A DNA stretch of 64,000 bases, from sequence record OR670491.1, one strand, 5' to 3'. Positions 1 through 64,000 of this stretch are shown one piece after another. Within the stretch, counting starts at the first letter, position 1, and each line of letters begins with the position of its first letter. The translations under genes were made by a program, and so were the position numbers. The notes below the pieces were generated by a model that was given only the letters and a program-made list of their open reading frames with translations, was not told where the DNA came from and ran no database searches.

Positions 1-62
1 TAATTAAAAAGGATACACTACTCTTAAGGGACATTGATTCAAAAAACCGCATTCGTGCTAAT

Positions 63-365
63 ATGTTTATTGCCCAGAATACTGAAGAAGAATTATCAGT
101 AAGTGATAACACCGAAAAGACAGAGACAGGTGCATATACTATTGACACCTTCAGTGAAGAATGGTATTTTCAAAACAGCCTTCTTCATCATTTACGCCCG
201 TATCAGGATACAAAATCGTTATGGGATATCTATCAAGTACTGAAATGTTGGGACGGGGGTTCTATTGATATGTTATCAGAGATGACTTCAAACTATTCCA
301 ACAGCACTATTGACACAGATGTAGTACTGAAAAAACTATGGAGCATGGTTGCTACTATAGATTAA
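63..365 (+). CDS. hypothetical protein, FQxS-motif family
   Basis: ORF; contains FSEEWYFQNSLL. Confidence 0.7.
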   Translation: MFIAQNTEEELSVSDNTEKTETGAYTIDTFSEEWYFQNSLLHHLRPYQDTKSLWDIYQVLKCWDGGSIDMLSEMTSNYSNSTIDTDVVLKKLWSMVATID

Positions 366-373
366 AAAAAAAC

Positions 374-401
374 GAGCCGGAGTGTTGACTTCGGCTTTTT
401 T
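374..401 (+). terminator. intrinsic terminator overlapping a promoter
   Basis: agccggag/cttcggct stem followed by a T-run. Confidence 0.75.
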
Positions 402-413
402 GTTTGGTACTAT
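385..413 (+). promoter_or_regulatory. sigma70-type promoter
   Basis: TTGACT-17-TACTAT. Confidence 0.65.
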
Positions 414-433
414 ATCTAAAAATAGGAGGATTT

Positions 434-988
434 ATGAGTTCAAGTTGTGACACCTTGTTTGAGCTATGCACCGATTCGCAGTTTGAAGGATGGGTGGATA
501 AAGTTAATGAATTAAGCGAACGTTATGCACGTTTCGTACAACTCGGTGAGTCTCTAAGTAACTTGCCGTTTACTGAGACTGGGGAAAGAGGAAGTTTAAG
601 TTATAAATGTGATGCATTGCGTTTAATTTTATCATATGATGGTTACCCATTTCTAAGATTATATCCACGTTCAAGAAATTCCAATAACTTGAATAATATA
701 ATTACACCACTATTTTTAACTTATAATACTCACAGTACTACACGAATTAAAATCAATAATGATATGCTACCGGACGATATATTAACAGTGTATGACCTCA
801 TGTACAGTCCTGATGAGCATTTTCAGTGCAGTACTCTATATAGTGTTCCTACCTATGAGAACGCTATTAAAACATTGGAGTTGATGCACAGTATTCAAGT
901 CCAAAGTGAACTATCATTAACGATGGAGTATTGTTTCTTCAATCATGATATTCTTAATAATCTAGATACAATTTTATACGGGTACTAA
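434..988 (+). CDS. hypothetical protein, FQxS-motif family
   Basis: ATG at 434 follows AGGAGG (track start 404 lies in the promoter); SPDEHFQCSTL. Confidence 0.75.
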   Translation: MSSSCDTLFELCTDSQFEGWVDKVNELSERYARFVQLGESLSNLPFTETGERGSLSYKCDALRLILSYDGYPFLRLYPRSRNSNNLNNIITPLFLTYNTHSTTRIKINNDMLPDDILTVYDLMYSPDEHFQCSTLYSVPTYENAIKTLELMHSIQVQSELSLTMEYCFFNHDILNNLDTILYGY

Positions 989-989
989 T

Positions 990-1604
990 ATGCGTAAAGA
1001 ATATGTTCAATCTTTTGCTATGTTGCAGCATTTAGAAGAAATACTACCACAGTGTATCAATTTTCAAAAAAGTATATACAAGAAGTACAGTATTTGTTCT
1101 CATATGACACTCCAACATAAGAAGTCAAATTTCTATACAGTGTATGATGATTATAATATCTTCTTAAAAAAGAACGGGTGTGACCTTCTTCATATTGAAA
1201 AGTGCAGTCCTAACAAAAATGACTACAGTGATGAATATGTGTTTATGCCTGAATATGATGAAGTGTATATTAATCCATGTTCGGATTTCACATTTGTTTT
1301 GCACAGCGATGACGATGACTCTGTTTACGATGTTTATGGCGTGTATAATGCAAAGTCTAAGATCATGTCATATGATGGCATTGACTTTAAAATTAAATCT
1401 AAAGATGATTGCGAAGCAGCACTTGCACAAATATTGACATTAGCTAATGTAACTATCAGTACAGACGAAGTGTGGAGTATGATTTCAGTACTTACTTCTT
1501 TGTACAGAAATAAAGATATACGTAATTTTAATATATCTTTTACTGAAACGTTTGATATTAAAAATAAATTGGTAACTGGAAATGAACTATTCGAATCTAA
1601 TTGA
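990..1604 (+). CDS. hypothetical protein
   Basis: 204-aa ORF abutting its neighbours. Confidence 0.7.
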   Translation: MRKEYVQSFAMLQHLEEILPQCINFQKSIYKKYSICSHMTLQHKKSNFYTVYDDYNIFLKKNGCDLLHIEKCSPNKNDYSDEYVFMPEYDEVYINPCSDFTFVLHSDDDDSVYDVYGVYNAKSKIMSYDGIDFKIKSKDDCEAALAQILTLANVTISTDEVWSMISVLTSLYRNKDIRNFNISFTETFDIKNKLVTGNELFESN

Positions 1605-2178
1605 AAATGCAAGAAACCTGAAAGGAATCAAAAACCTTTGGAGTACCTATGAATTTAATTTTCCCAAAAGTTCAGGTCTAGAAAGTTTAAATGTAGATAT
1701 CAAATTCCGTTATAATAATGGCATGACTGGAAAGATTAGGCTACATAAACTGGGTGTTACGTTCTATGATGACTGCGACCACAGTGTAGGTTTGGTAGAG
1801 TTCATTGACAACATGCAACAGGGTGAAAATTATATATGCAGTAGGATTGGTTCTGATGATTCTGAATTTATCATCGGTAATGGTTTACAATTCCATCTCA
1901 CTGAAGACTGGGATGAAGATTATTATGTGTATGATTATGAAAGTAAAAACATTTTTGATGAGAGTGATTCTCTTGTCACAGACCTCAACGAGCGTATCTT
2001 CCAGAAGAGTACTATCCAAGATAATGTGAGAACTCCAGAAGAAATTGTTGACATGTGCAATGCGTATGATACACTTATGGATATTATGAAAACTGATGGT
2101 ATCCAGTACATTTATCTTTGCGATGATGTATACGTGAACCAAATTCTGAAACGACTTGAGACATTTACTAAGAGGTAG
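1582..2178 (+). CDS. hypothetical protein, FQxS-motif family
   Basis: 198-aa ORF; NERIFQKSTI. Confidence 0.7.
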   Translation: MNYSNLIENARNLKGIKNLWSTYEFNFPKSSGLESLNVDIKFRYNNGMTGKIRLHKLGVTFYDDCDHSVGLVEFIDNMQQGENYICSRIGSDDSEFIIGNGLQFHLTEDWDEDYYVYDYESKNIFDESDSLVTDLNERIFQKSTIQDNVRTPEEIVDMCNAYDTLMDIMKTDGIQYIYLCDDVYVNQILKRLETFTKR

Positions 2179-2180
2179 TT

Positions 2181-2597
2181 ATGTTACTGTATCATGCCAG
2201 CCCAGTTAAAATTGAAAACTTTTACATTCCATTCGGTGGTTTGCATCTGGGCGGCAAGAACAGTGCACTGGAAGCAGCCCTACGCAAGCTGAGAAGCCCT
2301 CTGAACGTCGTAGACGCTAATACGGTACATCTGCATACCTGTGAGGTTAACGTCGCTAACGTGTATTTCAGTGATGATTTGGGTAGTGATGATTCATGGC
2401 GTGAGCTTATTGAGTACTGCCAAGCTAATGGCTATGATGCAGTACAGTACAAGAATGAGTTCGAGCCTGATGCTGTTCCTAGCTACATGATTTGGGATGT
2501 ATCTAACATTCGCATCGTTGAAGTTGATCCTATGCATATGGATGATGCAGAAATGATTTTGGAGGATTTCTATGCAGAGTATGAAGGACAATCTTGA
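2181..2597 (+). CDS. putative ADP-ribosyltransferase-fold protein
   Basis: N-terminal LYHAS strand, GLHLGG..SA and GYDAVQYKNEFE resemble small phage ART-fold domains. Confidence 0.4.
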   Translation: MLLYHASPVKIENFYIPFGGLHLGGKNSALEAALRKLRSPLNVVDANTVHLHTCEVNVANVYFSDDLGSDDSWRELIEYCQANGYDAVQYKNEFEPDAVPSYMIWDVSNIRIVEVDPMHMDDAEMILEDFYAEYEGQS

Positions 2598-3105
2598 GTG
2601 CACTAAGGTAATCTTGAAGATTGCTGAAATTTTCAGTACTTTATTGAGCGATGGAAAGATTACAGATGATCTGGTTCTTCCATACCCGTGGAAATTTTCT
2701 AAATTTTCTATATTTTATAAATTAGAATACAAAGAACATGCAGTACTGGAGTTTAATCCTAAAGCTGATTTCATTGAGAATAGTACACTGTTCGGAAAGA
2801 GTGGGTGCTATACATCGGACTTCAAAAAGATTACTACGCATATTCGTCCTTCTCCAGAAGAAAACGAGTTCCATTCATTTCTGTATCCTGAATTTAAGTT
2901 AACTGAAGAACTACTATTTCAGTACTCATTATTGTTCGAAGATGTACAAGATTTAGAGTTCTATAAAGAGTTAGTAGAAACTTTTAAGAATGTGAACCTT
3001 AAAAAAGATATTCTTATATTCTGGTTCATGGAGTATATTTCGAAGGATTTGCTAGATGAGTTTCTTCTAAATATGACAGCAATTAAGGAGAAGTTATATG
3101 CTTGA
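2572..3105 (+). CDS. hypothetical protein, FQxS-motif family
   Basis: LTEELLFQYSLLF. Confidence 0.7.
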   Translation: MQSMKDNLECTKVILKIAEIFSTLLSDGKITDDLVLPYPWKFSKFSIFYKLEYKEHAVLEFNPKADFIENSTLFGKSGCYTSDFKKITTHIRPSPEENEFHSFLYPEFKLTEELLFQYSLLFEDVQDLEFYKELVETFKNVNLKKDILIFWFMEYISKDLLDEFLLNMTAIKEKLYA

Positions 3106-3571
3106 CATTTTAGGTAATATTGATACAGTAAACTATTTCGTACAAGATGCATTGGTTGGGATTACGTCTAAGCCATTGCAGGTTCGCAACAATTTCCATC
3201 AGGGTGATGGATACATTGTGGACATTACTGAACCGAAAAAGAATGTATTCAATGTTAACATTGCAACAACAGGTCGTAACAATATCGCACGAATTATCAT
3301 TGACAAGAATGAAATTGTTCTTCGTTACAATGCTAAGTTCATGATGTTCTTCAAGAGTAAGACTGACATGTTCAGTACTAATCTCTTTGATGAACCATTT
3401 AAATTAGAAGATATCGAAGCAGTATTCTTTACTCAGAGTACGTGCTTTAAGTTCAGAGATGTAGAATTCAGTCCAGATGTAATGACTGAAACTTTACAAA
3501 TGCTAAGGATTATCTATTATGGGTTTAATGAGTTTGCACAAGAACGAAACCAGGTTAACAACTGTAGATGA
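3098..3571 (+). CDS. hypothetical protein, FQxS-motif variant
   Basis: RBS AAGGAG; EDIEAVFFTQST. Confidence 0.7.
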   Translation: MLDILGNIDTVNYFVQDALVGITSKPLQVRNNFHQGDGYIVDITEPKKNVFNVNIATTGRNNIARIIIDKNEIVLRYNAKFMMFFKSKTDMFSTNLFDEPFKLEDIEAVFFTQSTCFKFRDVEFSPDVMTETLQMLRIIYYGFNEFAQERNQVNNCR

Positions 3572-3977
3572 AACAATCGAGGCAGTACTGGCGAATCTTA
3601 GCTCCAAAAGGGATTACTGGTACAAAGGTATCCGTCTGTATCGTTTAACTGATCGTCACAATCAGGTTACGAATCAGTACGGTACACAGCAAGTCAAGTT
3701 CACTGCCTCAAAACGTAACACAGGGTTTGAAATTTCATGTGTAGTGTTAAATCTAAGTAAAAAACTTCTTGAATGCAATGAAGATTGTGCTATAATGTAT
3801 GCATCTGGTAACGAAGAGATCAAGATCGATTACAGTACACTAGATGAAATTGACTTCTTTCAGTACGAATGCATTGGCATTCAGACTCTAGGAGTTTCTC
3901 ATGATAAACTGAAGAAACTAATTCATACATTAAAAGGTATAATTGAACATGCAAGTAACTCCGCGTCTAAAGCTTAA
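3519..3977 (+). CDS. hypothetical protein, FQxS-motif family
   Basis: LDEIDFFQYECI; start uncertain. Confidence 0.65.
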   Translation: MGLMSLHKNETRLTTVDETIEAVLANLSSKRDYWYKGIRLYRLTDRHNQVTNQYGTQQVKFTASKRNTGFEISCVVLNLSKKLLECNEDCAIMYASGNEEIKIDYSTLDEIDFFQYECIGIQTLGVSHDKLKKLIHTLKGIIEHASNSASKA

Positions 3978-4452
3978 TTTAGAAAAAATTGCTGATTATC
4001 TTCGTACTAACAATATGGAACATAGTCTTTCGATTACAAGTGACCATATCCAATGTAGTACTAATGATTATACTGTACTGTTCGGGTTTCATAGCCTACG
4101 TTTGTCAGTAGTAAATAATCATGATGATACAGCAATTGTCATTACACCTTGTGATGTACTGAACAATGATGGTGAAGTACTTCACAAGAAACAAACCGTA
4201 TTCCATATCTTCAGGGGTGATGAGCCACAAGCATTGGAATACGATACACTGAACGTTGATAGTGGTGAATTGTTCCAGTTGGGTTTAGTACATGATTGTA
4301 CTTTCATGGATAACCGAGTAATTCTTCCTTTGTTGTTGAATATTCTGGTTAACCTTACAACATCTTCAATCCGACACTTCAACGATTCTATTTTAGTACA
4401 GGCGATGATAAACGTTTCAGAGGCAATCGAGGAATACAAAGTCGCCAGTTAA
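3943..4452 (+). CDS. hypothetical protein, FQxS-motif family
   Basis: DSGELFQLGLVHD. Confidence 0.7.
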   Translation: MNMQVTPRLKLNLEKIADYLRTNNMEHSLSITSDHIQCSTNDYTVLFGFHSLRLSVVNNHDDTAIVITPCDVLNNDGEVLHKKQTVFHIFRGDEPQALEYDTLNVDSGELFQLGLVHDCTFMDNRVILPLLLNILVNLTTSSIRHFNDSILVQAMINVSEAIEEYKVAS

Positions 4453-4492
4453 CCAATGCACAGGGAGTGCGATAAAGGATCAAGGATAGATC

Positions 4493-4966
4493 ATGGAGAC
4501 GAAAACTGTTGAGAACGGAAAGATAGATGACATTTTAGAATTGGACGCATTTAAAGTTCATGATATAATGTTCAATGTTAAAGACATTATTCAGTGTCTT
4601 TTCTTATGTAGCAAAACTATGCATGACTACTTTCACAACCCAAATACTAACATCTTTATACTTACTATTAGTACTGAAAACTCTTTCATCATGGGTATGC
4701 CTATGAGTACTAATGAAAAGTACATTGATAGTGTAATCCGTAATAATGAGAACATAACCCCACAATCTGAAGTGCATAAGAAGAAAAATACTTATACCAT
4801 TAAAGATGATAAAATTATGTTATGTTGTACTAAGGGATTTATTTTGGATAATTTTAAAGTGAAAGATAGTTATCATGATTTCAAAATATCTGAAAAGCAA
4901 ACTAATGTAGTTTTATATGCCACCGATATTGAAAGCCTAACAGTTAAAGATCCTGATTTGGAGTAA
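4493..4966 (+). CDS. hypothetical protein
   Basis: 157-aa ORF with AAGGA RBS. Confidence 0.65.
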   Translation: METKTVENGKIDDILELDAFKVHDIMFNVKDIIQCLFLCSKTMHDYFHNPNTNIFILTISTENSFIMGMPMSTNEKYIDSVIRNNENITPQSEVHKKKNTYTIKDDKIMLCCTKGFILDNFKVKDSYHDFKISEKQTNVVLYATDIESLTVKDPDLE

Positions 4967-4968
4967 TT

Positions 4969-5100
4969 ATGGCTAAAAATGTAAACAACTTCGTTCAGAA
5001 ACACATGAATGAGTTTAACAAACCTCAAACCCATGTGGATCGCAAAAAAGCGATGAAGAATGGAAAAACAAAACACAAGTCGAGATATATTCTCGACTAA
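4969..5100 (+). CDS. small basic protein (not in ORF track)
   Basis: GGAG RBS; translates as MAKNVNNFVQKHMNEFNKPQTHVDRKKAMKNGKTKHKSRYILD; resembles small basic proteins of T4-like phages. Confidence 0.65.
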   Translation: MAKNVNNFVQKHMNEFNKPQTHVDRKKAMKNGKTKHKSRYILD

Positions 5101-5119
5101 TTTTTTGCCTGGAGAAAGT

Positions 5120-5953
5120 ATGAAAGAATTTGATTACAAAAGTAAGTCAGTACTGGAATACATTGAATTACTAAATTCTAAAAATATTCCATTCGATGAT
5201 ACCAAGCTCCTTGGAAATGGAGATGAAAATTCATATAGTACTGAAAACTATGTAATCATTATTTCAAATGCAGCACCAGATATTGACATTACAGTACATA
5301 AGAAAAATAATGCCGCAGTGTTTATGTATACTCAAGATAGTAAATCAGAGTACTTACATTTCAGGGATATGAATTACTACAAAGAGAATGGTGAATTTAT
5401 ATTAAAATACAATATACTAAAGAATATCGAATTAAAAAAAGCACGATACTTTGATGGTGCTTATGACGTTAAAAGTTCAGATAAGCTTTGTATATTCACC
5501 ATGCATAAAAATATAGAAAAAGACAATGGATGGACTGAATTTGAAACTAAGTTCGATGAACAGAAAGTTTCTAATTTGTCAATACAAGAACGTTATGAAG
5601 GTTCAGATGTAGTGTGCAGTGCTGCTTACTTTCGTGCATTTGATAACACAACGAAACGTATGCAAATGCAAAACATTGACATTACGTTCAATGAAGGGTA
5701 TAGTACTGTTACTATTTCTTCAGGATATCGAAACAAGTTTACATTTGAGGTAGCAGTTCCAGACGGGTCAATTCTACACATATTTGACCCTGAATATATG
5801 TTCCAAGTTGAATTAACACTTGACACAGAGCAGTATGATAAATTACAATTTATTAGAAATTCAATCCAAGAAAAATTGGAATTATACCACTTACTAGGTG
5901 GAAAGAATCACAAAGCAACAATAGCATTACAAAATATCAAAAGTAAAAGGTAG
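5120..5953 (+). CDS. hypothetical protein, FQxS-motif family
   Basis: ATG at 5120 after GGAG; DPEYMFQVEL. Confidence 0.7.
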   Translation: MKEFDYKSKSVLEYIELLNSKNIPFDDTKLLGNGDENSYSTENYVIIISNAAPDIDITVHKKNNAAVFMYTQDSKSEYLHFRDMNYYKENGEFILKYNILKNIELKKARYFDGAYDVKSSDKLCIFTMHKNIEKDNGWTEFETKFDEQKVSNLSIQERYEGSDVVCSAAYFRAFDNTTKRMQMQNIDITFNEGYSTVTISSGYRNKFTFEVAVPDGSILHIFDPEYMFQVELTLDTEQYDKLQFIRNSIQEKLELYHLLGGKNHKATIALQNIKSKR

Positions 5954-5972
5954 TTCAAGGAGAGGATTTAGT

Positions 5973-6266: not shown

Positions 6267-6275
6267 AATAAATTG

Positions 6276-6303
6276 TGGACATTTAAATTCCTTATGATAT
6301 AAT
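6276..6303 (+). promoter_or_regulatory. early promoter
   Basis: TGGACA-16-TATAAT with TGn extended -10. Confidence 0.65.
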
Positions 6304-8082: not shown

Positions 8083-8098
8083 AAATTAGTGATATAAT
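8071..8098 (+). promoter_or_regulatory. early promoter
   Basis: GAGACA-16-TATAAT with TGn. Confidence 0.5.
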
Positions 8099-8100
8099 TT

Positions 8101-8134
8101 AAGGTGATAGCAGAGTTGTTATCACCTTTTTTTT
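8101..8134 (+). terminator. intrinsic terminator
   Basis: aaggtgatagc/gttatcacctt stem + T-run. Confidence 0.8.
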
Positions 8135-8750
8135 AATCCTGAAAGGTTCCATAAGGAAATGATTAAGACCTAATCCACTCGAAAAGTAGAGGGTAGTTGA
8201 GTAGTCCTTTCAGTACGAACAGCAGAAGAAACCCGTTAGATGTTGGCATAGTTTGAACCACTCACGGCAATGCGGCTGTATAAAGAACTCCGATAAGCAC
8301 ACAGAGAGTTCCTAGATAGACATATAAGGATCGCACCTTACGAGATTTGCTAAGGGAGATTTCACTTTGAAACGCGGTCGTAATTTATACAATATAGTTG
8401 CGTCCAAAATTTGTGAAATCAAATACAAGTACTGTTCATATGGTATTTGTATTATGTGTCGGGATGTTTAAGACCGACGACCGTTGCTACAAGAACCGCA
8501 ATAGAGAGAAACAGAGCAACCCGCTTTCGCCCCAGTACTGGGAATTTGTGATATGAATATGTGAAGACCATCAGCGTCAAACTTTTTGTTCTTTCCCCTG
8601 CGGGGGGATGAAATATGTTCAAACAAATCCCGTCAATATTAATTAAACTACTAATAAAGCTGAATTAGACATGCGAAGCGTGTATAATTCTACCGATTTT
8701 TATTGAGTGCTAACGAAATAAAAGTCGTGTACATTCATTGATGTTTCCAT
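8135..8750. ncRNA. candidate large structured ncRNA (or replication origin)
   Basis: ~620 nt with no ORF of 60 aa or more on either strand; at least 9 complementary helices including long-range pairings. Confidence 0.45.
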
Positions 8751-8757
8751 AGGAATA

Positions 8758-9316: not shown

Positions 9317-9844
9317 ATGAGTGAAAAGGATTCTACTCAAACAAATAAACATTCAGTACACTTCAGTACTGGAAAGGATAACTGGACTACACCGAAGGAA
9401 TTATTTGAAGATTTGGATGAAATCTGGGGATTTACATTAGATGCTGCTTGTGTTAAAGAAACAGCACTATGTGAGAAGTACTTCACACCAGAAGATGATG
9501 CACTTTCACAGGATTGGGGTAAGAATATTTGCTGGCTCAACCCACCCTATAGTGATTTGAAAACTTGGTTATCTAAGGCGGTGGATGCATACAATAATGG
9601 TGCAACAGTAATGATACTAGTACCTTCAAGAACTGATACTATTGCATTTCAACAGTACGCAGCTAAGGTATGTGATTGTGTATGTTTCATTAAAGGTAGA
9701 TTGCGTTTTGGTATTCCTGAAGAACCTGAAAAGAAAACTGATTCAGCCCCCTTCCCTAGTTGCTTGATAGTACTGGATAAGTACTTGACTCCCGCTAAAC
9801 TAAATTATCTTAAATCTCTTGGATTGGTGATGAAGAACGTATGA
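9317..9844 (+). CDS. dam: phage DNA N6-adenine methyltransferase (T1/HP1-type Dam family)
   Basis: WTTP..LF..L...WGFTLDAA, WLNPPYS catalytic motif, LVPSRTDT, FIKGRLRF, SAPFPS. Confidence 0.9.
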   Translation: MSEKDSTQTNKHSVHFSTGKDNWTTPKELFEDLDEIWGFTLDAACVKETALCEKYFTPEDDALSQDWGKNICWLNPPYSDLKTWLSKAVDAYNNGATVMILVPSRTDTIAFQQYAAKVCDCVCFIKGRLRFGIPEEPEKKTDSAPFPSCLIVLDKYLTPAKLNYLKSLGLVMKNV

Positions 9845-10380
9845 AAGAAGCTTGTGTAGTAACATTCGGGAGAGTTAACCCGATACATAAAGGACATGGA
9901 TTAGTGTTTGAAAAGGCACAATCCCTACAAGAACAGTACGATGCGGACTTAAAGATCTTCCTAAGTACCAGTACTGATAATGTTAAAAACCCCTTACCAC
10001 CTGAATTGAAAATGTATTACACAGAGGGATTCTATCCTAATGTGCAAGAAAACATTTGCATTGAGGACAATTTATTTGATATAATGAGAGAGTTAGATGG
10101 GAAGTACATGGATGTGTTGTTCATCTGTGGCTCTGACAGGATTAACTCTTTCCAAAAAACTCTTGACAGCTACAATGGTAAGCTGTATAATTTCTGTAAT
10201 ATTAAGGCAATCCAAGCAGGTATTGACCGTAATGTTAGTAAGTACAGTTCAACACAAATGCGTTCCTTTGCTAAGAATGATGACTTCGAAAGCTTCAGTT
10301 CATTTTTACCAGGGAATGATATCGACTTAAAACAAAAACTCTTTGAAGATGTAGTAAAATACATGAGGAAAGAATTATGA
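9841..10380 (+). CDS. cytidyltransferase-like (HIGH-superfamily) nucleotidyltransferase
   Basis: VVTFGRVNPIHKGH, ICGSDR, SSTQMR motifs. Confidence 0.8.
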   Translation: MKEACVVTFGRVNPIHKGHGLVFEKAQSLQEQYDADLKIFLSTSTDNVKNPLPPELKMYYTEGFYPNVQENICIEDNLFDIMRELDGKYMDVLFICGSDRINSFQKTLDSYNGKLYNFCNIKAIQAGIDRNVSKYSSTQMRSFAKNDDFESFSSFLPGNDIDLKQKLFEDVVKYMRKEL

Positions 10381-29122: not shown

Positions 29123-29407
29123 ATGACAAAAGTACTCGTTCGTAATAACAGTACTGAAGAAGTTCAAGTACTCGATGATTCAGAATTCATTGATGTAGCA
29201 CTAACTCAAATGTCCGAAGCTGCATTGTCAGTTAAAGGATGTACACAGTCTGAAGAACTGCTTGATGGTTTAGCTGTAGTTCTTGAACTAATGCAAGAAG
29301 TACTTGCAAAAAATAACATCAATCCAATTAACGTTGTGACACATGCAACCAATCTACGTAATGAGTTTGGTTCATTCAGTGACAAAAAAGCATCCACTAA
29401 AGAATAA
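29123..29407 (+). CDS. degenerate MazG-like NTP pyrophosphohydrolase homolog
   Basis: KVLVR start, EELLD..AVVLE and C-terminal R.EFGSF follow the COG4997-type layout. Confidence 0.4.
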   Translation: MTKVLVRNNSTEEVQVLDDSEFIDVALTQMSEAALSVKGCTQSEELLDGLAVVLELMQEVLAKNNINPINVVTHATNLRNEFGSFSDKKASTKE

Positions 29408-38374: not shown

Positions 38375-39655
38375 GTGATAATAAAACATCTGTATTATAT
38401 TGACTCAAATTTCAGAAAATACGATAAAGTTTCAAAACTTAATCCAAAATACATTACAGATGTTATTTTCCAAGAAAAATACAACATAGATCGAAACAGT
38501 ACTGAAATACTACAGGATGATATATCATCATATACACCAAACGTAACGGGTTTTTATTATATAAAATACCCAACTGGTGTTAGAAAAGTTTATGCTTTAA
38601 AATGTAATGAGTGCTCTAAAAACTCAGTATTACATGGCGAAGGAATATATCTGGTTCACTTGTCACACATCAAAAACGGAATCATTTCGTGTGGGTGTGC
38701 AAAACGCACAAACTGGACACCATATCAATATTACATAAAAATGATATCAGAATGTAAAAATCGTAATTGCATTTTTTTAGGTTACGATAAAAAACACTTA
38801 CGTTTATATTGTCTCGAACATGGTTACTGGAATACCACATCCAAAGCACACTTCTTTAATGGGAAAGGATGTAGTAAATGTGGGGACACCAATTCAAGAG
38901 TGTTGAGAACAAAAGACAGTTATTTTCATATATCTAAATTTAAAATCTTAAATGCGTATAATTATCGACGTTCCGACAAGATTGATAGTAGTGGTCGCTT
39001 GCGTTATTGGGAATATATGTGTAAGAAATGTTCACATGATGAGTATGTTAGGCTCGGTTTGTGTAATGGGATTTTTACATCATTTAATAGTGATTTAGTA
39101 AAGGGTAAGAAATCATGTCGTTGTTCAAGTAACTATAGATGGACAGAAAAACAGCGTGAATATCAAATCACCAAACTCCTAAAATCCAATTTTCCTCACA
39201 TTAGCTTTAAAGGTTGGGTAAATAGTTATAAAAATATCCATAGTAAGGCGATTTTAAATTGTAATATTCATAATAATTATACGCAAAAAGTAAACTACAT
39301 ACTTAATAATAATTGTGGTTGTCCACAATGTGCTGGGATGACACAGACAGAATGTTATATAAATGTAATATATGATGTGTTTCCAATTGCTATAAAATAT
39401 GGAATTTCAACACATACAAAAAACCGCGTTTGTAGTCAAAATAATAAATCACCATTTGACGTTATTAATCATGGAATTTGGGATTTTGAAAATCCATATT
39501 TATGCAAAATGGCAGAAAATGAATGCAAGCGAACGGTAAGTCGTGTTCTATCAGAACGCGAGCTACCTGACGGATTTACTGAAACCGCTGAAGTGAAATA
39601 TATTGATGATATAATTAAAATATATGAAAGCTGGGGTGGTATCAAACGAAAATAG
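38375..39655 (+). mobile_element. free-standing homing endonuclease (Cys-rich repeats + C-terminal GIY-YIG/T5orf172-like domain)
   Basis: repeated CxxC/CxxH units (KGCSKCG, CGCPQCAG); IKYGIS...R...E...DGFTET; AT-rich. Confidence 0.7.
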
Positions 39656-39665
39656 TAGTTTTTTG

Positions 39666-39693
39666 TAGACAAAACGAAAAATAGTGATATAAT
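39666..39693 (+). promoter_or_regulatory. early promoter
   Basis: TAGACA-16-TATAAT with TGn. Confidence 0.7.
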
Positions 39694-39726
39694 AATGTTA
39701 TTAACAACAAAGAAGGAGAATCAATC

Positions 39727-39924
39727 ATGGCTAAACAACCTAAGAAAAAAGAACCTGAAGTTAAAGTTAAGAAAGTTAAAGTTATTCAATCTAAAGAACA
39801 ACGTAATTACGAACTACGTAAAGCAGAAACCCTATCAGGTCTTCAAGCTCTACGTAAACAAGGTGTTCTAACTCGTGCTCAATACCGTGAGATAGTAGCA
39901 CAAAAAGGTTATTGGTCCATTTGA
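39727..39924 (+). CDS. small basic protein
   Basis: AAGGAG RBS; Lys-rich. Confidence 0.75.
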   Translation: MAKQPKKKEPEVKVKKVKVIQSKEQRNYELRKAETLSGLQALRKQGVLTRAQYREIVAQKGYWSI

Positions 39925-40019
39925 AGCAATAAACTGGAGTTCTTCATAAATACTTTCATAAGAATAATAATACTTTTTATGAAAATTAAAAAGAACTCCA
40001 TGTGTTATTTCAGTTTTTC

Positions 40020-40046
40020 ATCCCTGTCTTTTGGCAGGGATTTTTT
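40020..40046 (+). terminator. intrinsic terminator
   Basis: atccctgtc/ggcagggat + T-run. Confidence 0.75.
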
Positions 40047-40065
40047 CTATCCATAGGAAAGTGAG

Positions 40066-40800
40066 ATGAGCATAACTGATATATCCAATAAAGTTATTAA
40101 TGAATTGGTACAGAGAGGTTTTGCATCACCTATGATATATGGTTCGTGGTGCTACTATGAAAAGTACAAATTCGATGACAAGTATCCTAATGACATTGAT
40201 GTGATTAACATAGTACATGAAGAGTCGGAGGAAGGTGAATTTACTTTGGAGTTGAATTGTATTGACATTCCAGTTAATGTCGAATGCATGACTCTTCAGC
40301 ATTTTAGACAAGATTACAAGACTCCACAAATTAAGTACTTGGGTATAGGTCTTGCAGGTTCCAACAATTCATCAATCAATCACATCTTTTTATATCTAGG
40401 TGCAGTTCACAGTTACTATGCTGAACTTCCCAAAAATGTTGTTCGAACTATGTGCAGTTCATCATCGTCTAAGGCATTTAACAAAGGTGTTAAGAAACTG
40501 ACACTTGACGATGACTACGATAAAGATTTGGGTCTAAAAAACATCTGGCATAGCATTCATTTCATTTCTATAGTAGATTCATATTACAAGTCCTACGATG
40601 ATAGTCTTAATGTTGCAGAATATGCGTTGTATACTGAATATAACATGTTGCGTTGTATCCCGATGCGTGATATGATATATAAAATTTACGAGGAAACTGA
40701 AGGTTCTCTTCAGGATAAGGCTCAAGCAGTCATAGACTATGCAAAGCCTTTACGTAACAAATTAATGACAGAATTTCGTGCCTTATACCCAAAGGAGTGA
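40066..40800 (+). CDS. Pol-beta-type nucleotidyltransferase-like protein
   Basis: IYGSW...DIDVI motif; helical C-terminus with KNIWHSI. Confidence 0.55.
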   Translation: MSITDISNKVINELVQRGFASPMIYGSWCYYEKYKFDDKYPNDIDVINIVHEESEEGEFTLELNCIDIPVNVECMTLQHFRQDYKTPQIKYLGIGLAGSNNSSINHIFLYLGAVHSYYAELPKNVVRTMCSSSSSKAFNKGVKKLTLDDDYDKDLGLKNIWHSIHFISIVDSYYKSYDDSLNVAEYALYTEYNMLRCIPMRDMIYKIYEETEGSLQDKAQAVIDYAKPLRNKLMTEFRALYPKE

Positions 40801-45200: not shown

Positions 45201-45301
45201 ACTTTTGATTGGCTTATTAGCAATGATATTGTTTTTTATATGTTCCGCTCCAATTAATACTATGGTGTTGATTTGGGCAGTTGTAATTTTAGCAGTACTT
45301 T

Positions 45302-45326
45302 AAAAGCACCCTAGTGGTGCTTTTTT
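45302..45326 (+). terminator. intrinsic terminator
   Basis: aaaagcacc ctagt ggtgctttt. Confidence 0.8.
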
Positions 45327-57896: not shown

Positions 57897-57900
57897 TAGT

Positions 57901-57945
57901 TTTATTGGTCACAATGCACCTAAAAATGGCACTGTGACCAATAAA
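57901..57945. terminator. long inverted repeat / terminator with overlapping late-promoter-like AATAAATA
   Basis: tttattggtcaca ... tgtgaccaataaa, 13-bp perfect inverted repeat. Confidence 0.6.
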
Positions 57946-57985
57946 TATCCAATATAAACGTAATTAAACTTAAGGATATCCCTTT

Positions 57986-58613: not shown

Positions 58614-58614
58614 T

Positions 58615-61410
58615 ATGTTAAACAATAATCCTAATATTGATAATATCGTACAGTTAATTTATGGTCATCACAAATTTCTTGAAAGAAACACTGGTGATAC
58701 AATTGACCCTACTGTACAGCACTATGTAATTAATGAACAAGGCGTATTGGCTAACAACCGTCATTTCATCAATCACTCCGCAATGGAAGGACAACCAAAT
58801 GGTGACGGCACAACAGAAGGTCAAAGTCTCCTTATTCTTGGATACATTTATGCGTATTTGGCAACCAACGACAATTTATTTCTTGAAAAAGCTAAATGGT
58901 ACTGGGATGCATATCATCAGTACTTCTATAATGGTAGAGAATTTCCTGATCCACCAACTCCGTTACAATGCAACTGGATTGTGAACGCAAAGGAACCAAT
59001 TCTAGCAAACTGGCCTTTGGCTGACGACGGATGGCCTACTCACGGTGGATTTAAAGGTATCGAGTTTCCTTTCGTTAATGGTCAATGCAAAGTGCCTCAT
59101 GGTGCTCCATATTATGGTGAGTATATTGATAAAGTTACGTTTGCATTCAAAGGTGCATTGGCATGGAATCAAATAAATGCATCAGTAAAAGCAATATTAC
59201 CTGATGGAAGTACAGATTGGGATAACCCTGGTGAGCAGTATGATGTTGATTGGGTTATAGATTTCTTAGGTCGTAAAGTTGATTGGGATGGAAACATTCT
59301 GGCTGAAGGTTTTGATGAATCTGAAAAAGGTACTGTCCAATTAAAAGACACTACACTCAATGGAACTTATAAACTAAACTTTGCCAACAGACAACCTATT
59401 GAATTTGGTGGTGTTTATATTGAACGTAACCAAATGCAACATAACCGTCCATTACACGTTCCAATTAGTTTAGAGTTTGCTGATAACGCGAGTGATGCCG
59501 AATTATGGTTCAGTGATGCTTCTTACTTGTTATATAAAATAACCAAAGAAAGAAAACATTATCTTGGCTGGAAATGTTCACTACTTACATGTTATGCATA
59601 CGGAGATATTGACGCAAAAGATAAATTCTTCCGTCAAAGTACAATTGTTACTACCCCATTTACTGATGGTATTTCATATGAATATTTCTATCCAAGTACT
59701 GCAATTGCTGAATTTGGAAGAAACTCACTTGGATATATTACAATTAAGCAACAAGAAAGTGCACAAAGTACACTTGAGCAACAGGCTATTTGGTTCAGAT
59801 TGAATACATCGTCCAGCTTAGTTGTTGATTACGGTGGTGTTTGTGTTGATGGGAAACCTTTATCATTTAAACCAGTACTGGAATTATCGAAAACAAAGAA
59901 TGAGCATGATACTGTTCGCTATCGCTGCGGTCTTCCAGAAAGTACCAATAGAGATATCAAACATTCAATAACACCGCTGAGTGCATTTGTTCGTGAGAAA
60001 AAAGATGATGGTTCCCCTTACATTATTGCAGATAGTAGAATTGTAGTTCCGTATGGTTCAGGTACATCAGAAATGTTATATAGTACTGATATTTTAGAAA
60101 CAAGACGAGACACTATTAACCAATTAGTTTGTGGTGAAGATGATGGTGCAGTTATTGGTTTCTGGTTACTTGATTCCGGTAAATCTGAAGTGAAAGCTTT
60201 TACTTATCGTTCATATGAAGATGATTATAACATCCGTATCGTTGATGATAATGGCTGGCGTTGGTGGTGGATGATTCCTGCAACCCACGGTGAATGGAGT
60301 ACAATAGAATTAACTGCTGATACTTTACATTTATCTGGATGGCAACCAAATCACCCTGATGACCCTGATCCTGCTGCTCCGGTATATACAGAATTAGAAG
60401 ATATTACAATTCTCCCTGATACGACTCCAGTAAATGGAGTTGCAGTACTGGATTGGTATTGTTTAAACGAGCTACCAGAACTGTACAACAACGAAGATGG
60501 CGATGACTACACTATGGCATTCGCCATTACAATTGCTGGTGAGAGTGCTTATACGGCTCTTTTAGGGGATTGTGTAATCAAAGATTATTTGCTAAACTCA
60601 TTACATTATACACCAGGAACTATCCCGTTCTCTAACATTACCGACCCATATGCTAGTCAGTACTCTGGATGGCGTGGATTACCATATCCTGGGTATCAGT
60701 ATCCTGTAATCTACTGTTTCGAAGATGTACCAGTTGACCATACACGCCTTGGTAATATGGTTGATTTCATGAAAGATTCTCAAGAGTGGTTTACTTCACA
60801 ATTCGGTACTGTTGGTCCTTGTGCTCAAGCATATGTATGGAACCGTTGGGATAACCTGAAATATGGGGAACCCGATACGTTTACTATGTTACACTGGGGT
60901 GATCAAGCGTGGAGTGGTTATGAACCTCGTGCATTCTTTGGTGCTTGTAGAGCATGGCAAGAACTACATGACCGTGGTGAGGAAGTTCCACAAACAATCA
61001 TTGATTTCTGTGAGAACTGGATTCATTTCTTGATTAAGTTTCAGAAAGACAATGATGGTCGCTCCCCGACGATTTTCAACAAAGATGGTACAGTTGAAGG
61101 TCCAGATTGGGACTTCACCGGACATATGTGTGGATTGTGGTTGGCAGGTGCATGTTGTGCTGGTCTTGCTGGATGTACCATTGAGGGATTAGATGAACTC
61201 GCTGATGGTTTAGTACTGGAACTTCAGAACAACTATGTGGTAGTTTCTCCTGGCTCTGTTATGAACGGTTCATGGAGTCCTGGTGTTCGTGAAGGTACTG
61301 ATAATGGTATGTTCTTCGGATTCTGGGCTGGTGAGATTATGCGTGGTTTAGGATTGTACTCAATGTACCGCCTTAACACACCTAACCGTTATGCTGCATT
61401 TCCTGGTTGA
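58615..61410 (+). CDS. GH8-like (alpha/alpha)6 glycoside hydrolase with internal CBM-like insertion; probable virion depolymerase
   Basis: TTEGQS and NASDAELW match the GH8 TSEGQS and ASDAD catalytic motifs; Trp-rich beta insert. Confidence 0.65.
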   Translation: MLNNNPNIDNIVQLIYGHHKFLERNTGDTIDPTVQHYVINEQGVLANNRHFINHSAMEGQPNGDGTTEGQSLLILGYIYAYLATNDNLFLEKAKWYWDAYHQYFYNGREFPDPPTPLQCNWIVNAKEPILANWPLADDGWPTHGGFKGIEFPFVNGQCKVPHGAPYYGEYIDKVTFAFKGALAWNQINASVKAILPDGSTDWDNPGEQYDVDWVIDFLGRKVDWDGNILAEGFDESEKGTVQLKDTTLNGTYKLNFANRQPIEFGGVYIERNQMQHNRPLHVPISLEFADNASDAELWFSDASYLLYKITKERKHYLGWKCSLLTCYAYGDIDAKDKFFRQSTIVTTPFTDGISYEYFYPSTAIAEFGRNSLGYITIKQQESAQSTLEQQAIWFRLNTSSSLVVDYGGVCVDGKPLSFKPVLELSKTKNEHDTVRYRCGLPESTNRDIKHSITPLSAFVREKKDDGSPYIIADSRIVVPYGSGTSEMLYSTDILETRRDTINQLVCGEDDGAVIGFWLLDSGKSEVKAFTYRSYEDDYNIRIVDDNGWRWWWMIPATHGEWSTIELTADTLHLSGWQPNHPDDPDPAAPVYTELEDITILPDTTPVNGVAVLDWYCLNELPELYNNEDGDDYTMAFAITIAGESAYTALLGDCVIKDYLLNSLHYTPGTIPFSNITDPYASQYSGWRGLPYPGYQYPVIYCFEDVPVDHTRLGNMVDFMKDSQEWFTSQFGTVGPCAQAYVWNRWDNLKYGEPDTFTMLHWGDQAWSGYEPRAFFGACRAWQELHDRGEEVPQTIIDFCENWIHFLIKFQKDNDGRSPTIFNKDGTVEGPDWDFTGHMCGLWLAGACCAGLAGCTIEGLDELADGLVLELQNNYVVVSPGSVMNGSWSPGVREGTDNGMFFGFWAGEIMRGLGLYSMYRLNTPNRYAAFPG

Positions 61411-61434
61411 CAACAAAATTTAAACTGATATAAT
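61407..61434 (+). promoter_or_regulatory. early promoter overlapping a terminator
   Basis: TTGACA-16-TATAAT with TGn. Confidence 0.7.
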
Positions 61435-61465
61435 GAGAACTTCAATATGAGGTTCTCATTTTTTT
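61432..61465 (+). terminator. intrinsic terminator
   Basis: aatgagaac/gttctcatt + T-run. Confidence 0.75.
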
Positions 61466-61477
61466 AAGGTGAATATA

Positions 61478-61873
61478 ATGCTAAATCAAAATATCATGAA
61501 AGCTCTGAAAATCATCCAACACGAAGTTAGTCTGGTACAGAAAAGTACTGATCGTTATTGCCTGATGGAAGATATCCAAGAGCAAATTGAACTTATTCGT
61601 AAAAATAAGGCTGTTGTTTCTCAATCTGAATCGTTAGAGGCAATTGCTGATATCATTTCATCCAAAACTGGAACAGCACGTGAAAATATTCTCGGTGCAC
61701 GCGACCTCGAACAAAGCGAGATTGAACATTTATATAAGTTCGATAACTGCGATTGGATTGAGATGATTATGGAACTAGAAGATAAGTTCGATTTAGAGAT
61801 CCCTACACACTTTGAAAGCAGAGACACTACACTTGGTTCTTTAGTTAATTTTATTGATCTAAAATATAATTAA
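61478..61873 (+). CDS. acyl-carrier-protein-like protein lacking the Ppant serine
   Basis: FDNCDWIEMIMELEDKFDLEIP aligns to [22 protein letters not shown] of E. coli AcpP; ~50-aa N-terminal extension. Confidence 0.75.
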   Translation: MLNQNIMKALKIIQHEVSLVQKSTDRYCLMEDIQEQIELIRKNKAVVSQSESLEAIADIISSKTGTARENILGARDLEQSEIEHLYKFDNCDWIEMIMELEDKFDLEIPTHFESRDTTLGSLVNFIDLKYN

Positions 61874-61882
61874 TAATGTACT

Positions 61883-61889
61883 CTAAATA
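61883..61889 (+). promoter_or_regulatory. late promoter candidate
   Basis: CTAAATA ~28 nt before the spanin start. Confidence 0.45.
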
Positions 61890-61916
61890 ATATCATCAAC
61901 TATAGGAGATATTATT

Positions 61917-62291
61917 ATGAGTATGCTAGAACTATTGCTTAAACATGTAATTATACCATATTGGAAACCATTATTAGTTGTTTTAGTAATGTCTGGATGT
62001 GTGTATGGTGGATGGGAAGCAAACAATTACTACACCGGATACAAAGAAAGCATTGATTTGAAAATTGAAAAACAAGTCAATGCTGCTTTGGATCAGATGC
62101 AACAAGAATCGGCTAAAAGTTATATTGAAACTAAGCAAATCATGCAAGATAATGCTAAGGTCATTGAAACTAAAATACCTTACATCGTTGAACGTGAAGT
62201 TTACTACAATGTATGTTTAGACCAAGATGGTGTGAATGTTCTTAAAGAACTAAAAGAAAATTCACGTAAAGCGAGGAATCAGTACAAATGA
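61917..62291 (+). CDS. inner-membrane spanin (Rz-like)
   Basis: N-terminal TM, coiled region, VY..VCLD.DG; overlaps a lipoprotein gene. Confidence 0.75.
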   Translation: MSMLELLLKHVIIPYWKPLLVVLVMSGCVYGGWEANNYYTGYKESIDLKIEKQVNAALDQMQQESAKSYIETKQIMQDNAKVIETKIPYIVEREVYYNVCLDQDGVNVLKELKENSRKARNQYK

Positions 62292-62593
62292 AATATATTC
62301 TGATTTTATCATGTGCACTATTATTTGCTGGATGTGCTCAAAAAGTACAATTACCTGCTGACCGAGTAGTAAAGCAAGAGATTCTACTTGAGCGTTGTTC
62401 GTTTGATACCCCACTCCCTGAACAAATTGTTGTTGACAAACACGGCAATTCAGGATACTCTGGTAAAGAAGTTTTGGATGTACTACGTAAATGGGATTCA
62501 ATCTACAATGATTGTGCTCTAAAGCACGATGCATTAATTGACTTGATTCGTAAACTACAAGGTGAAAACATCACGGTCATTATTAAAGAGTAA
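62288..62593 (+). CDS. outer-membrane spanin lipoprotein (Rz1-like)
   Basis: lipobox LFAGC; LERC..D.PLP; YNDCA.KHDAL. Confidence 0.8.
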   Translation: MKYILILSCALLFAGCAQKVQLPADRVVKQEILLERCSFDTPLPEQIVVDKHGNSGYSGKEVLDVLRKWDSIYNDCALKHDALIDLIRKLQGENITVIIKE

Positions 62594-62603
62594 GGACATT
62601 TGA

Positions 62604-63200
62604 ATGAAGAAATATCAGGTTTACTATAAAACTAATTTAGATTTAATTCATAAACTATCTACTACTGGAGAAGGTACTAAGCGTTATACTTTCAATAAGG
62701 TAACATTCAGATACTTCCCACAAAAAGTACTGACATTTGTTAAAAATTGCAAATGCATTGCTTGTGGTATCGAAGGAACCGAAGTTCGTATTGAACGTTC
62801 TCACAGTAACGATCCAATTTATGGTAAACCTCATCTCAATGTCTATGCAGTGTGTGGATTGTATGAAGTACTCATGACCGTAGATCATAACCATCTGGCT
62901 TCTAAAGGCGGGTCTGATTTAGAAAGTAATTTTAATACCATGTGCGTTCACTGTAATCAAATGCGTTCAAATAAAACTGAAACAGTTCAAGAATTTCTTG
63001 AAAATGTTAAAGGTCGAAATCTATTAGATGAACACATGAAACTTTTTTTCGATAAACAGGAAAAGAAAAAGAACCCTTCTAATAGAAAGCCAGAAACAAT
63101 CGCTTATGAAAAATGGTGGAATGAAGAACATTTATGGCATTACCGTGATTATCTTCGTAAATTGAAAAAAGAAGAAAAAGCTTTACTTAAACAAAAGTAG
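62604..63200 (+). CDS. HNH endonuclease-like protein
   Basis: CIAC, TVDH..LASKGGSD...N...MCVHCN. Confidence 0.8.
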   Translation: MKKYQVYYKTNLDLIHKLSTTGEGTKRYTFNKVTFRYFPQKVLTFVKNCKCIACGIEGTEVRIERSHSNDPIYGKPHLNVYAVCGLYEVLMTVDHNHLASKGGSDLESNFNTMCVHCNQMRSNKTETVQEFLENVKGRNLLDEHMKLFFDKQEKKKNPSNRKPETIAYEKWWNEEHLWHYRDYLRKLKKEEKALLKQK

Positions 63201-63210
63201 TATGTATAAT
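63182..63210 (+). promoter_or_regulatory. promoter overlapping a terminator
   Basis: TTTACT-17-TATAAT. Confidence 0.55.
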
Positions 63211-63238
63211 GGGACTTGAGAAATCAAGTCCTTTTTTT
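63211..63238 (+). terminator. intrinsic terminator
   Basis: gggacttga gaaa tcaagtcct + T-run. Confidence 0.8.
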
Positions 63239-63251
63239 ATAGGTAAAATAT

Positions 63252-63608
63252 ATGAAAACTAAAATCTTTCTACCACAAACCATGATGGAACTGTGTGAAC
63301 ATGATGCAGGAGATGTAGTCACTATTAGTGGTTCCTGGATTGAGAGTACTGAAGACTTTATGCCAGATGAGGTTTATTCTGTTGTTTTAAATGAACAGTA
63401 CAATACAAGCCGTTGGAATGCACAGTACAATCTAGTTTTTCTTGACAAGAACAATGAAAAGTACTATCATTGTACGTATGAACGAGGTCTGACAGAACGT
63501 AACTACACAACTCCTTTCTGTGATGAAATGGATGGTGTAAAGTGCTATGAAGTTTCTGTTCGTCAGGTTCCAGTTGTTACTTACAAAACCGAGTGGGATT
63601 ATCTGTAA
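63252..63608 (+). CDS. hypothetical protein
   Basis: 118-aa acidic ORF; SRW..Y..LVF. Confidence 0.7.
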   Translation: MKTKIFLPQTMMELCEHDAGDVVTISGSWIESTEDFMPDEVYSVVLNEQYNTSRWNAQYNLVFLDKNNEKYYHCTYERGLTERNYTTPFCDEMDGVKCYEVSVRQVPVVTYKTEWDYL

Positions 63609-64000
63609 TGCTTAAAGATTTAGATTTTTCAAATTTAGAGATCATCAGTGCAGTGAAGAACATTACTGATATGGATGATGAAAAAGGTGTAATGGTAACT
63701 ATCACTTTCGTAAAGGAAGAGGATAGCTATAAGCATCTTACTGGAATTGAAGAACTAATCCACAAGACCAATCTCGAAAACGATGGTAAGCTTATCAAGC
63801 TTCAGGCATCCTATTCCCAAAAAACGTCATTTTTTGTAGACCTAAATAATGTAGTCAAGGTGGTATACAATCATCCTGACAACAAATACAGAAGCACAAC
63901 ACGAAACGAAGAAGCAGCCATCGACACTAATATCAAAGATGATGTCGAATTTGTTAATACAGTTTTTGAGCGTTGTGCACCTGAATTGAAAAAAGTATAC
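63608..64000 (+). CDS. hypothetical protein, truncated by the window end (not in ORF track)
   Basis: TAATG overlap; open frame MLKDLDFSNLEIISAVKNITD... runs to 64000. Confidence 0.65.
   Translation, partial: MLKDLDFSNLEIISAVKNITDMDDEKGVMVTITFVKEEDSYKHLTGIEELIHKTNLENDGKLIKLQASYSQKTSFFVDLNNVVKVVYNHPDNKYRSTTRNEEAAIDTNIKDDVEFVNTVFERCAPELKKVY

Follow-up and report, generated by a model that had tools for sequence, protein, structure and literature searches.

The genome of Escherichia phage vB_EcoM_JNE01 carries the palindromic hexamer AGTACT exactly 1000 times versus 119 expected from base composition, which corresponds to approximately one site per 356 bp. We estimate at roughly 80% the probability that AGTACT acts in cis as a word recognised at the DNA level and maintained by selection or drive. 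The stretch of 64,000 nt in which the motif was first noticed (hereafter the window) corresponds to bases 1-64000 of record OR670491.1 (100% identity). JNE01 has a genome of 355,583 bp and belongs to the genus Asteriusvirus; it is a 121Q/PBECO4-like jumbo myovirus of E. coli. We examined the whole genome as eight loci (L001 to L008), whose beginning was checked to be the window; L005:35566 is genome position 235,566, L006 covers genome 250-300 kb and L007:35200 is genome position 335.2 kb. The record was obtained by SPAdes assembly of Illumina NovaSeq reads (PMC10868205); hence, the motif is not a modification-dependent basecalling artefact. No description of AGTACT enrichment in these phages, or in phages generally, was found in the full-text literature searched.

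The window contains 187 copies of AGTACT versus 21.5 expected from base composition. This 8.7-fold excess is close to the approximately 10-fold enrichment announced by an earlier reading of the same letters (the original prediction), whose hand counts for the first two 10-kb segments (about 37 and 28) were exact. The following segments hold 31, 25, 25 and 32 copies, and the final 4 kb hold 9. AGTACT is the commonest hexamer of the window, and 48 of its copies there are part of the octamer CAGTACTG. These sites form a lattice over positions 1-64000, with a mean spacing of ~342 bp and a Poisson-like distribution. Local clustering is illustrated by three copies within 42 bp inside a coding sequence (29131-29172), and the longest AGTACT-free stretch of the window, 1836 bp (38504-40333), is within the Poisson prediction. 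AGTACT also ranks first among the hexamers of the whole genome, as does CAGTACTG (233 copies) among the octamers. The number of AGTACT copies per 10-kb bin of the genome ranges from 13 to 67, and the densest part is an early-type region at genome 305-335 kb, with 60-67 copies per 10 kb. The gaps between sites are exponentially distributed, with a coefficient of variation of 1.07, and the genome-wide gap analysis found no periodic spacing or even coverage.

The Markov-expected genome counts for orders 0-4 are 119, 119, 225, 401 and 835, respectively, and thus the excess belongs to the complete hexamer and to the pentamers arising from it. The flanks are biased as had been predicted, with C before 88 and G after 97 of the 187 copies in the window (45% and 49%, respectively, in the genome); G before and C after are the rarest. 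The preference is mild and symmetric (C at -1, G at +1, T at -3 and A at +3), with little information beyond ±1.

The pressure had been proposed to act at the level of the DNA itself, as opposed to that of proteins or codon usage, and this proposal withstood the two tests named with it, a codon- and dipeptide-preserving shuffle and a comparison of synonymous sites between relatives. As the original prediction also stated, copies are found in all three frames and outside genes. In the genome, 396 are read as AGT-ACT, 160 as xAG-TAC-Txx and 284 as xxA-GTA-CTx, and 160 are in non-coding DNA or at gene edges. Non-coding DNA is about twice as dense in AGTACT as coding DNA (5.0 versus 2.6 copies per kb), and the non-coding part of the window contains 11 copies versus 1.9 expected. 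For the shuffle, synonymous codons were permuted within each gene, which leaves the amino acid sequence, the dipeptides and the codon usage fixed. The coding sequences of the genome have 841 copies of AGTACT versus 257±12 after shuffling (z=47), and 182 copies of CAGTACTG versus 19.7. A shuffle of whole codons yields 150 AGTACT. When the window alone was submitted to 300 synonymous shuffles with the codon usage of each gene fixed, 48.7±6.3 copies were obtained, with a maximum of 65, versus 175 observed (z=20); for CAGTACTG, the corresponding numbers are 3.3 and 42.

The motif makes extensive use of the opportunities that the proteins offer. Of the Ser-Thr dipeptides, 52% are written AGT-ACT, and AGTACT is carried at 46% of the permissive x-Val-Leu and 42% of the permissive [K/Q/E]-Tyr-[T..] positions. 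Thus, approximately half of the protein-permitted opportunities carry the hexamer, equally across the three frames. The dipeptides ST, VL and QY are enriched 1.3-1.5 times, whereas the reversed TS, LV and YQ are not; AGTACT has reshaped the dipeptide content of the phage proteins. That it might conversely be a mere consequence of codon usage, dipeptide frequencies or low-order composition has practically no chance of being correct. Such an origin might be read into the maximal-order Markov model, in which the observed/expected ratio (O/E) of AGTACT is only 1.18-1.20, and into the favoured codons of JNE01, which include AGT, ACT, GTA and TAC, with AGT accounting for 33% of Ser codons. However, the excess persists at z=47 with protein and codon usage fixed, it is stronger in non-coding DNA, and the favoured codons and pentamers themselves result from AGTACT. 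The shuffles and the non-coding density thus rule out an artefact of codons, dipeptides or composition. The phage encodes a tRNA-Ser with the anticodon ACU (L005:49165-49256), a Watson-Crick match of the motif codon AGU; tRNAs with A34 are unusual in bacteria. Its other tRNAs are Thr(UGU) (two copies), Leu(UAA), Gly(UCC), Ser(UGA) and Met (two copies).

Conservation was assessed in an alignment of 56 genes orthologous between JNE01 and 121Q, with 73% nucleotide identity. Between 49 and 57% of the AGTACT sites are identical in the two phages, versus 23% for hexamers as a whole and 26-29% for the other palindromes that have two G/C. Among synonymous codons located in AGTACT and specifying a conserved amino acid, 130 of 161 are identical versus 92 expected from the same codons elsewhere, and the comparison in the reverse direction gave 121 of 143 versus 87. 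The synonymous sites are thus conserved beyond the level of the control codons. The commonest replacement of the motif is AGTTCT, a synonymous or conservative change in all three frames.

The enrichment is shared by a group of relatives, with factors of 7.9 in 121Q, 6.9 in RaK2, 6.8 in GAP32, 6.7 in CBB and 7.1 in Serratia phage BF, and of 11.7 and 12.3 in XaC1 and XbC2, which were reported on Xanthomonas. It spans the named genera Asteriusvirus, Alcyoneusvirus, Mimasvirus and Eneladusvirus as well as Xanthomonas phage XaC1. More distant jumbo phages do not show it: the PA5oct-like PAC2 has 3 copies versus 13.6 expected, XacN1 has 0 versus 10.2 and Atu_ph07 has 3 versus 16.6. The trait is confined to one jumbo-phage clade. 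An explanation restricted to Enterobacterales as hosts is weakened by XaC1 and XbC2. In a 50-kb sample of E. coli K-12, there are 3 copies versus 11.6 expected, or about one per 17 kb, so that JNE01 is ~47 times denser than this small sample. The flanks of XaC1, with a preference for A..T, are unlike the C..G of JNE01, and only the hexamer core is invariant, which fits an enzyme-type 6-bp recognition. AGTACT is probably read by a protein of the clade with a Type-II-like 6-bp specificity.

The abundance of AGTACT is accompanied by a loss of other palindromes. Of the 64 palindromic hexamers, as many as 28 are missing from the window and 22 from the whole genome. GGTACC and CGTACG, whose rarity the original prediction had pointed out, are absent from both. 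The tetramer GCGC has 0 copies genome-wide versus 383 expected, hexamers with four or more G/C are nearly all gone, with the exceptions of GTGCAC, CACGTG and ACGCGT, and CGATCG is found once. EcoRI and EcoRV sites are not avoided. The avoidance of restriction sites thus holds for the 22 hexamers and GCGC and has the opposite sign for AGTACT. The sampled pieces of the relatives that have the motif also contain no GCGC, and each lacks 24-30 palindromic hexamers. An origin of AGTACT by deamination, from GCGC to GTAC or from AGCACT/AGTGCT to AGTACT, was rejected, as the intermediates are enriched and 383 expected GCGC cannot yield 1000 sites. The DNA of RaK2 is reported to contain m5C in a CpG context and to resist most restriction enzymes (PMC3622015); this resistance may largely reflect absent sites.

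Outside genes, AGTACT occupies defined positions in the early region (L007:5000-35000), where it is present in 27 of 34 near-consensus sigma70-type promoters, in one of three registers. In 18 cases it directly adjoins the -10 element (AGTACTG-TATAAT), in nine it forms the 5' edge of the -35 element (AGTAC-TTGCAA) and in three it overlaps the latter (TTGAC-AGTACT). This region consists of tiny open reading frames (ORFs) on the + strand and is rich in perfect TTGACA-N16-TATAAT promoters, 13 of which match at 12/12 positions within 20 kb; a second promoter class has the form AGTAC-TTGCAA-N16-TATAAT. Tandem repeats containing AGTACT are found at genome 310.88-311.02 kb. The phage also encodes a sigma-70-family protein in L006, with regions 2 and 3; region 4 is not among the families listed.

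The motif is also found in terminators and in intergenic elements. At about genome 293-305 kb (L006:43697-L007:4965), a minus-strand cluster of seven RCC1-like repeat paralogues is present, most of which are followed by a terminator whose stem is made of two AGTACT copies, as in GCCAGTACT-tg-AGTACTGGC. In the window, a copy directly precedes, on the 5' side, a terminator-like hairpin (AAGCACC-CTAGT-GGTGCTT followed by a T run) on the + strand upstream of nrdD (45294-45326). The non-coding copy at 8534, which was said to lie in a longer palindrome, is indeed part of the 12-bp palindrome CCCAGTACTGGG (8531-8542), in a gene-free stretch of 675 bp (8083-8757). The same stretch contains, on the + strand, the repeated intergenic element AGTTGCGTCCAAAATTTG, which is followed by AGTACT at 8428 (8398-8433 together); AGTTGCGTCCAAAWTTTG of this element covers 8398-8415. 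Further copies of the AGTTGCGTCCAAAWTTTG element are found at genome positions 64332 and 267244, each time adjoining AGTACT. All three are in unusually long non-coding gaps and have no Rfam match; an Rfam scan of the window likewise returned no match.

The best candidate reader is an orphan N6-adenine DNA methyltransferase of the Dam family (PF05869, E=4.7e-34) encoded on the + strand at 9317-9844. The gene is present and conserved across the motif-positive phages, with protein identities of 82-88% in Asteriusvirus, 63-69% in RaK2, K64-1, Munch and Erwinia phage Hallingskeid, 49% in XaC1 and 42-44% in XbC2 and Eneladusvirus. It is also present in CBB and GAP32 according to PMC5259590, while the papers on PA5oct and XacN1 mention no DNA methyltransferase. 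In JNE01, the gene is adjoined by a cytidylyltransferase-like gene (9841-10380, + strand; weak PF01467 match), and this adjacency is annotated in most relatives. If the enzyme read AGTACT, it would generate a dense m6A lattice, with about one mark per 356 bp, which would label the phage DNA as self. With AGTACT in the early sigma70-type promoters, promoter activity would in addition depend on the methylation state, for instance by differing between incoming, fully methylated DNA and newly replicated DNA. In cyanobacteria, alternate highly iterated palindromes (HIPs) co-occur with methyltransferases of matching specificity (PMC4390886).

We favour this methyltransferase as the reader only tentatively, as the case for it is circumstantial and phylogenetically confounded, and several points weigh against it. 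Characterised PF05869 enzymes, such as T1 Dam and Stx-phage Dam, methylate GATC. The motif-positive phages all form one group of close relatives; hence, the co-occurrence of methyltransferase and motif is not independent evidence. Acinetobacter phage Herod has a 42%-identical homologue and 7 AGTACT versus 12.5 expected, which rules out that the motif travels with the methyltransferase family. Methylation alone gives no reason why more sites would be better, and it does not explain the island of one-stranded AGTACA with a conserved 5' C described below. Finally, the conservation of the sites cannot separate selection from a drive by biased repair. A second methyltransferase, a C5-cytosine enzyme, is encoded at genome 235,566-237,455; it is split by an intein (Hint and LAGLIDADG) directly after the catalytic Pro-Cys and was found by Pfam, having not been picked up by our regular-expression search for methyltransferases.

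The original prediction had offered a binding lattice, a modification target or a recombination or replication signal as examples of what the motif might be, and sequence data alone would not single out any of them. We rank methylation first, then a protein-binding lattice, an oriented signal for a tracking machine and a neutral repair drive. The second of these, which we regard as unlikely, is that a dimeric, non-enzymatic phage protein binds the AGTACT lattice and only rarely the host DNA, organises or protects the phage DNA or recruits machinery to it, and represses the early promoters as it accumulates. The palindromic nature of the motif, its mild symmetric flank preference, the conservation of its sites and its far higher density in the phage than in the host sample would all suit such a protein, as would the fixed registers at the -35 element or in the spacer beside the -10 element of the 27 early promoters and the peak of density in the early region. 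In contrast, there is almost no information past 8 bp, while dimeric regulators usually read 12-20 bp, and the flank preference varies by lineage. The Pfam scans, which covered 449 predicted proteins or about four-fifths of the JNE01 proteome, listed no candidate for a sequence-specific DNA-binding protein beyond the sigma factor and a DksA/TraR zinc finger, which is a weak argument since most proteins have no family; a ParE-like domain was also listed. A symmetric dimer would moreover leave a strictly one-oriented island unexplained.

This island is the longest AGTACT-free stretch of the genome. It spans 5.7 kb (335.2-340.9 kb; L007:35200-40900) directly downstream of the early region. It contains zero AGTACT and 50 copies of the pentamer AGTAC on the + strand, followed by A in 33 cases, C in 12 and G in four (49/50), whereas 64% of the AGTAC pentamers genome-wide are followed by T. 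The reverse-strand form BGTACT (where B is C, G or T) is present once. The pentamers are found in every reading frame as well as in non-coding DNA; 24 of 49 copies retain C at -1, but G at +1 is lost. The independent isolate Turkey5 has the same island sites, which together with the Illumina data for JNE01 rules out an artefact of assembly or basecalling. The syntenic region of 121Q (L021:12500-17500) has 0 AGTACT, 29 AGTACV (where V is A, C or G) and 0 BGTACT in one count, and in another all its 37 pentamers are AGTACA, although its proteins are only 24-29% identical to those of the JNE01 island. We found no clear island in RaK2, where at most a mild version is present. The polarity typical of Chi or KOPS is seen only in the 335-341 kb island and not for the palindromic AGTACT of the window and the genome. 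As this polar zone has been maintained for a long time, something also reads the oriented word CAGTAC, and CAGTACTG can be seen as two overlapping oriented words. The DNA-level reading of the original prediction is therefore supported with two refinements: the raised conservation does not separate selection from a biased-repair drive, and the island points to reading of one strand as well.

AGTACT might be an oriented signal for a machine that tracks along DNA, in the manner of Chi, KOPS or primase sites, with the one-stranded CAGTAC as the functional unit. CAGTACTG would then be the cheapest way to put CAGTAC on both strands of a genome replicated by recombination, in which forks and ends run both ways. 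We deem this explanation improbable. It accounts for the near-exclusive + strand orientation of the island, the asymmetric fate of its flanks and the persistence of the pattern in Turkey5 and 121Q, and the Poisson-like scatter implies that density matters and position does not. The true Chi sequence GCTGGTGG is also 12 times enriched, with 18 forward and 7 reverse copies genome-wide versus 1.5 and 1.1 expected, and it is co-oriented near the island, with 11 forward and 2 reverse copies at genome 309.8-329.2 kb (L007:9800-29200). However, the pentamer-only forms outside the island show no strand bias (462 sense versus 475 antisense), are only ~2 times enriched and are conserved barely above background, the full hexamer being the conserved unit. 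No clear island exists in RaK2, no candidate for a sequence-recognising tracking enzyme was identified and, to our knowledge, primase trinucleotides need no enrichment. Several Chi copies of the early region are located in intergenic spacers adjoining AGTACT. The co-oriented Chi copies near the island hint at a DNA end close by; no terminal repeat was found between the two ends of the JNE01 record.

Somewhat less probable still is a neutral drive, in which biased mismatch repair or gene conversion linked to a methyltransferase generates and restores AGTACT without any function, as in the ratchet model of Elhai for HIPs. Such a drive also predicts enrichment in all frames and in non-coding DNA as well as an apparent conservation of sites. 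The one-mismatch variants of AGTACT have O/E values of 1.45-2.3 for the outer positions and 0.5-1.8 for the inner ones, an outer-position bias that resembles that of HIP1. In T4-like phages, recombination-dependent replication yields much heteroduplex DNA, which would favour this process. Nevertheless, no one-mismatch neighbour is depleted: AATACT/AGTATT have an O/E of 1.1 and all nine classes are at 0.9-1.5 in a second-order Markov model, in contrast with CTWGG in E. coli under very-short-patch repair. We thus set aside a repair of this type for want of a depleted donor neighbour, and the Vsr and MutH families are not among the Pfam families listed for the 449 proteins, at 25 families in two of the four listings. 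A neutral drive would further require a long-lasting switch to a one-stranded word in the 5.7-kb island, and the fixed promoter registers of AGTACT also speak against it.

A signal at the RNA level, with AGUACU as a site for an RNase or an RNA-binding protein or as a means of pairing between copies, is very unlikely. Paired copies do make terminator stems, the change of the word within the island affects the sense strand of + strand genes only, and the window carries a set of RNA-repair and nuclease genes (Rnl1, PNKP, RlaP and PIN domain). However, AGTACT reaches its highest density upstream of transcription starts, in promoter DNA; a signal in RNA would not have to be palindromic, and it provides no mechanism for enrichment in every gene class. 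It is even harder to credit that the phage hijacks the host nucleoid-occlusion protein SlmA, with replicating phage DNA blocking cell division: although AGTACT forms the exact centre of GTGAGTACTCAC, the sequence bound by SlmA in E. coli (PMC3020112), and the hosts of motif-positive phages are mostly Enterobacterales, the required flanks are absent or disfavoured in the phage. The 12-bp site GTRAGYRCTYAC requires G1, T2, A4 and G5 and a purine at position 3 (PMC3020112), whereas the phage prefers C where this purine is needed and G is rarest there (12%). The degenerate site has 0 full matches, and its half-sites number 11 and 18 versus ~31 expected for each. These wrong flanks largely refute the SlmA reading, and the trait is also found in the Xanthomonas-reported phages.

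Returning to AGTACT as a word recognised at the DNA level, it appears by analogy to be best filed as a phage variant of the HIP phenomenon, and the comparison with HIP1 made in the original prediction was apt. HIP1, GCGATCGC, and the alternate HIPs of cyanobacteria (Elhai 2015, PMC4390886) are likewise short palindromes present once per few hundred to thousand bp, independent of frame, found in non-coding DNA, with variants biased towards the outer positions and orphan methyltransferases encoded in the same genomes. JNE01 has the genome-wide excess, the frame independence with non-coding presence and the outer-biased variants, as well as two methyltransferases, the Dam-family and intein-containing C5 enzymes, whose specificities are unreadable from sequence. 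It differs from HIP1 proper in that the word is the AT-rich AGTACT, with no GATC or CG core, and the bearer is a lytic phage and not a cyanobacterial cell; the phage adds a near-total purging of other palindromes and a one-stranded variant island.

AGTACT is also the recognition sequence of ScaI (PMC8919816). The 6-bp palindrome is identical, and Type II enzymes typically recognise such a 6-bp core with flanks that carry no information. However, restriction sites are normally avoided by phages, and AGTACT is in 8-fold excess; the search for a cognate endonuclease was negative, no endonuclease family being among the Pfam families listed for the 449 proteins. Chi, KOPS and DNA uptake sequences are likewise short words enriched genome-wide and read by DNA-processing machines, and inverted pairs of uptake sequences likewise occur in terminators. 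In contrast to such asymmetric, strand-skewed words, AGTACT is a palindrome, the exception being the one-stranded AGTACA of the Asteriusvirus island.

Other genes may be mentioned. Positions 14000-48000 of the window are rich in genes of RNA repair and nucleotide metabolism. The Pfam matches in the window include a T4 Rnl1-type RNA ligase, PNKP, RlaP, a cyclic-phosphate REC domain, a PIN domain, Sir2, Nudix, PhoH, an ATP-dependent DNA ligase, two ClpP, two dCMP deaminases and NrdD/NrdG. Elsewhere in the genome, the large terminase ORF (L004:23670-26330) codes for 886 residues, of which only ~410-886 can be aligned to other large terminases. An insertion or a fusion is suggested by the N-terminal half, whose matches are to unrelated phage proteins.

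We speculate, although the odds are clearly against the full scheme, that these T4-related jumbo phages, which lack hydroxymethylcytosine, use a dense sequence code and not a modified base to discriminate between self and host DNA. CAGTAC(T), present on both strands about every 350 bp, would be read by phage machinery, in the form of a methylation mark or through a protein that tracks along or binds the DNA, and would control early-promoter shut-off, protection or processing, while the AGTACA zone near the early region would provide polarity near a genome end.

A pressure as strong as that on AGTACT implies a major unrecognised cis-acting system in phages that are the subject of therapy and biocontrol research, and the trait has persisted across several genera. 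These phages offer a tractable model for the old unsolved problem of HIP1, being lytic, with some relatives growing on E. coli K-12 and with two methyltransferases. In practical terms, ScaI should cut these genomes approximately 1000 times if AGTACT is unmodified, many of the 22 absent palindromic hexamers are common cloning sites, and the density of AGTACT is a clean signature for spotting the clade in metagenomes.

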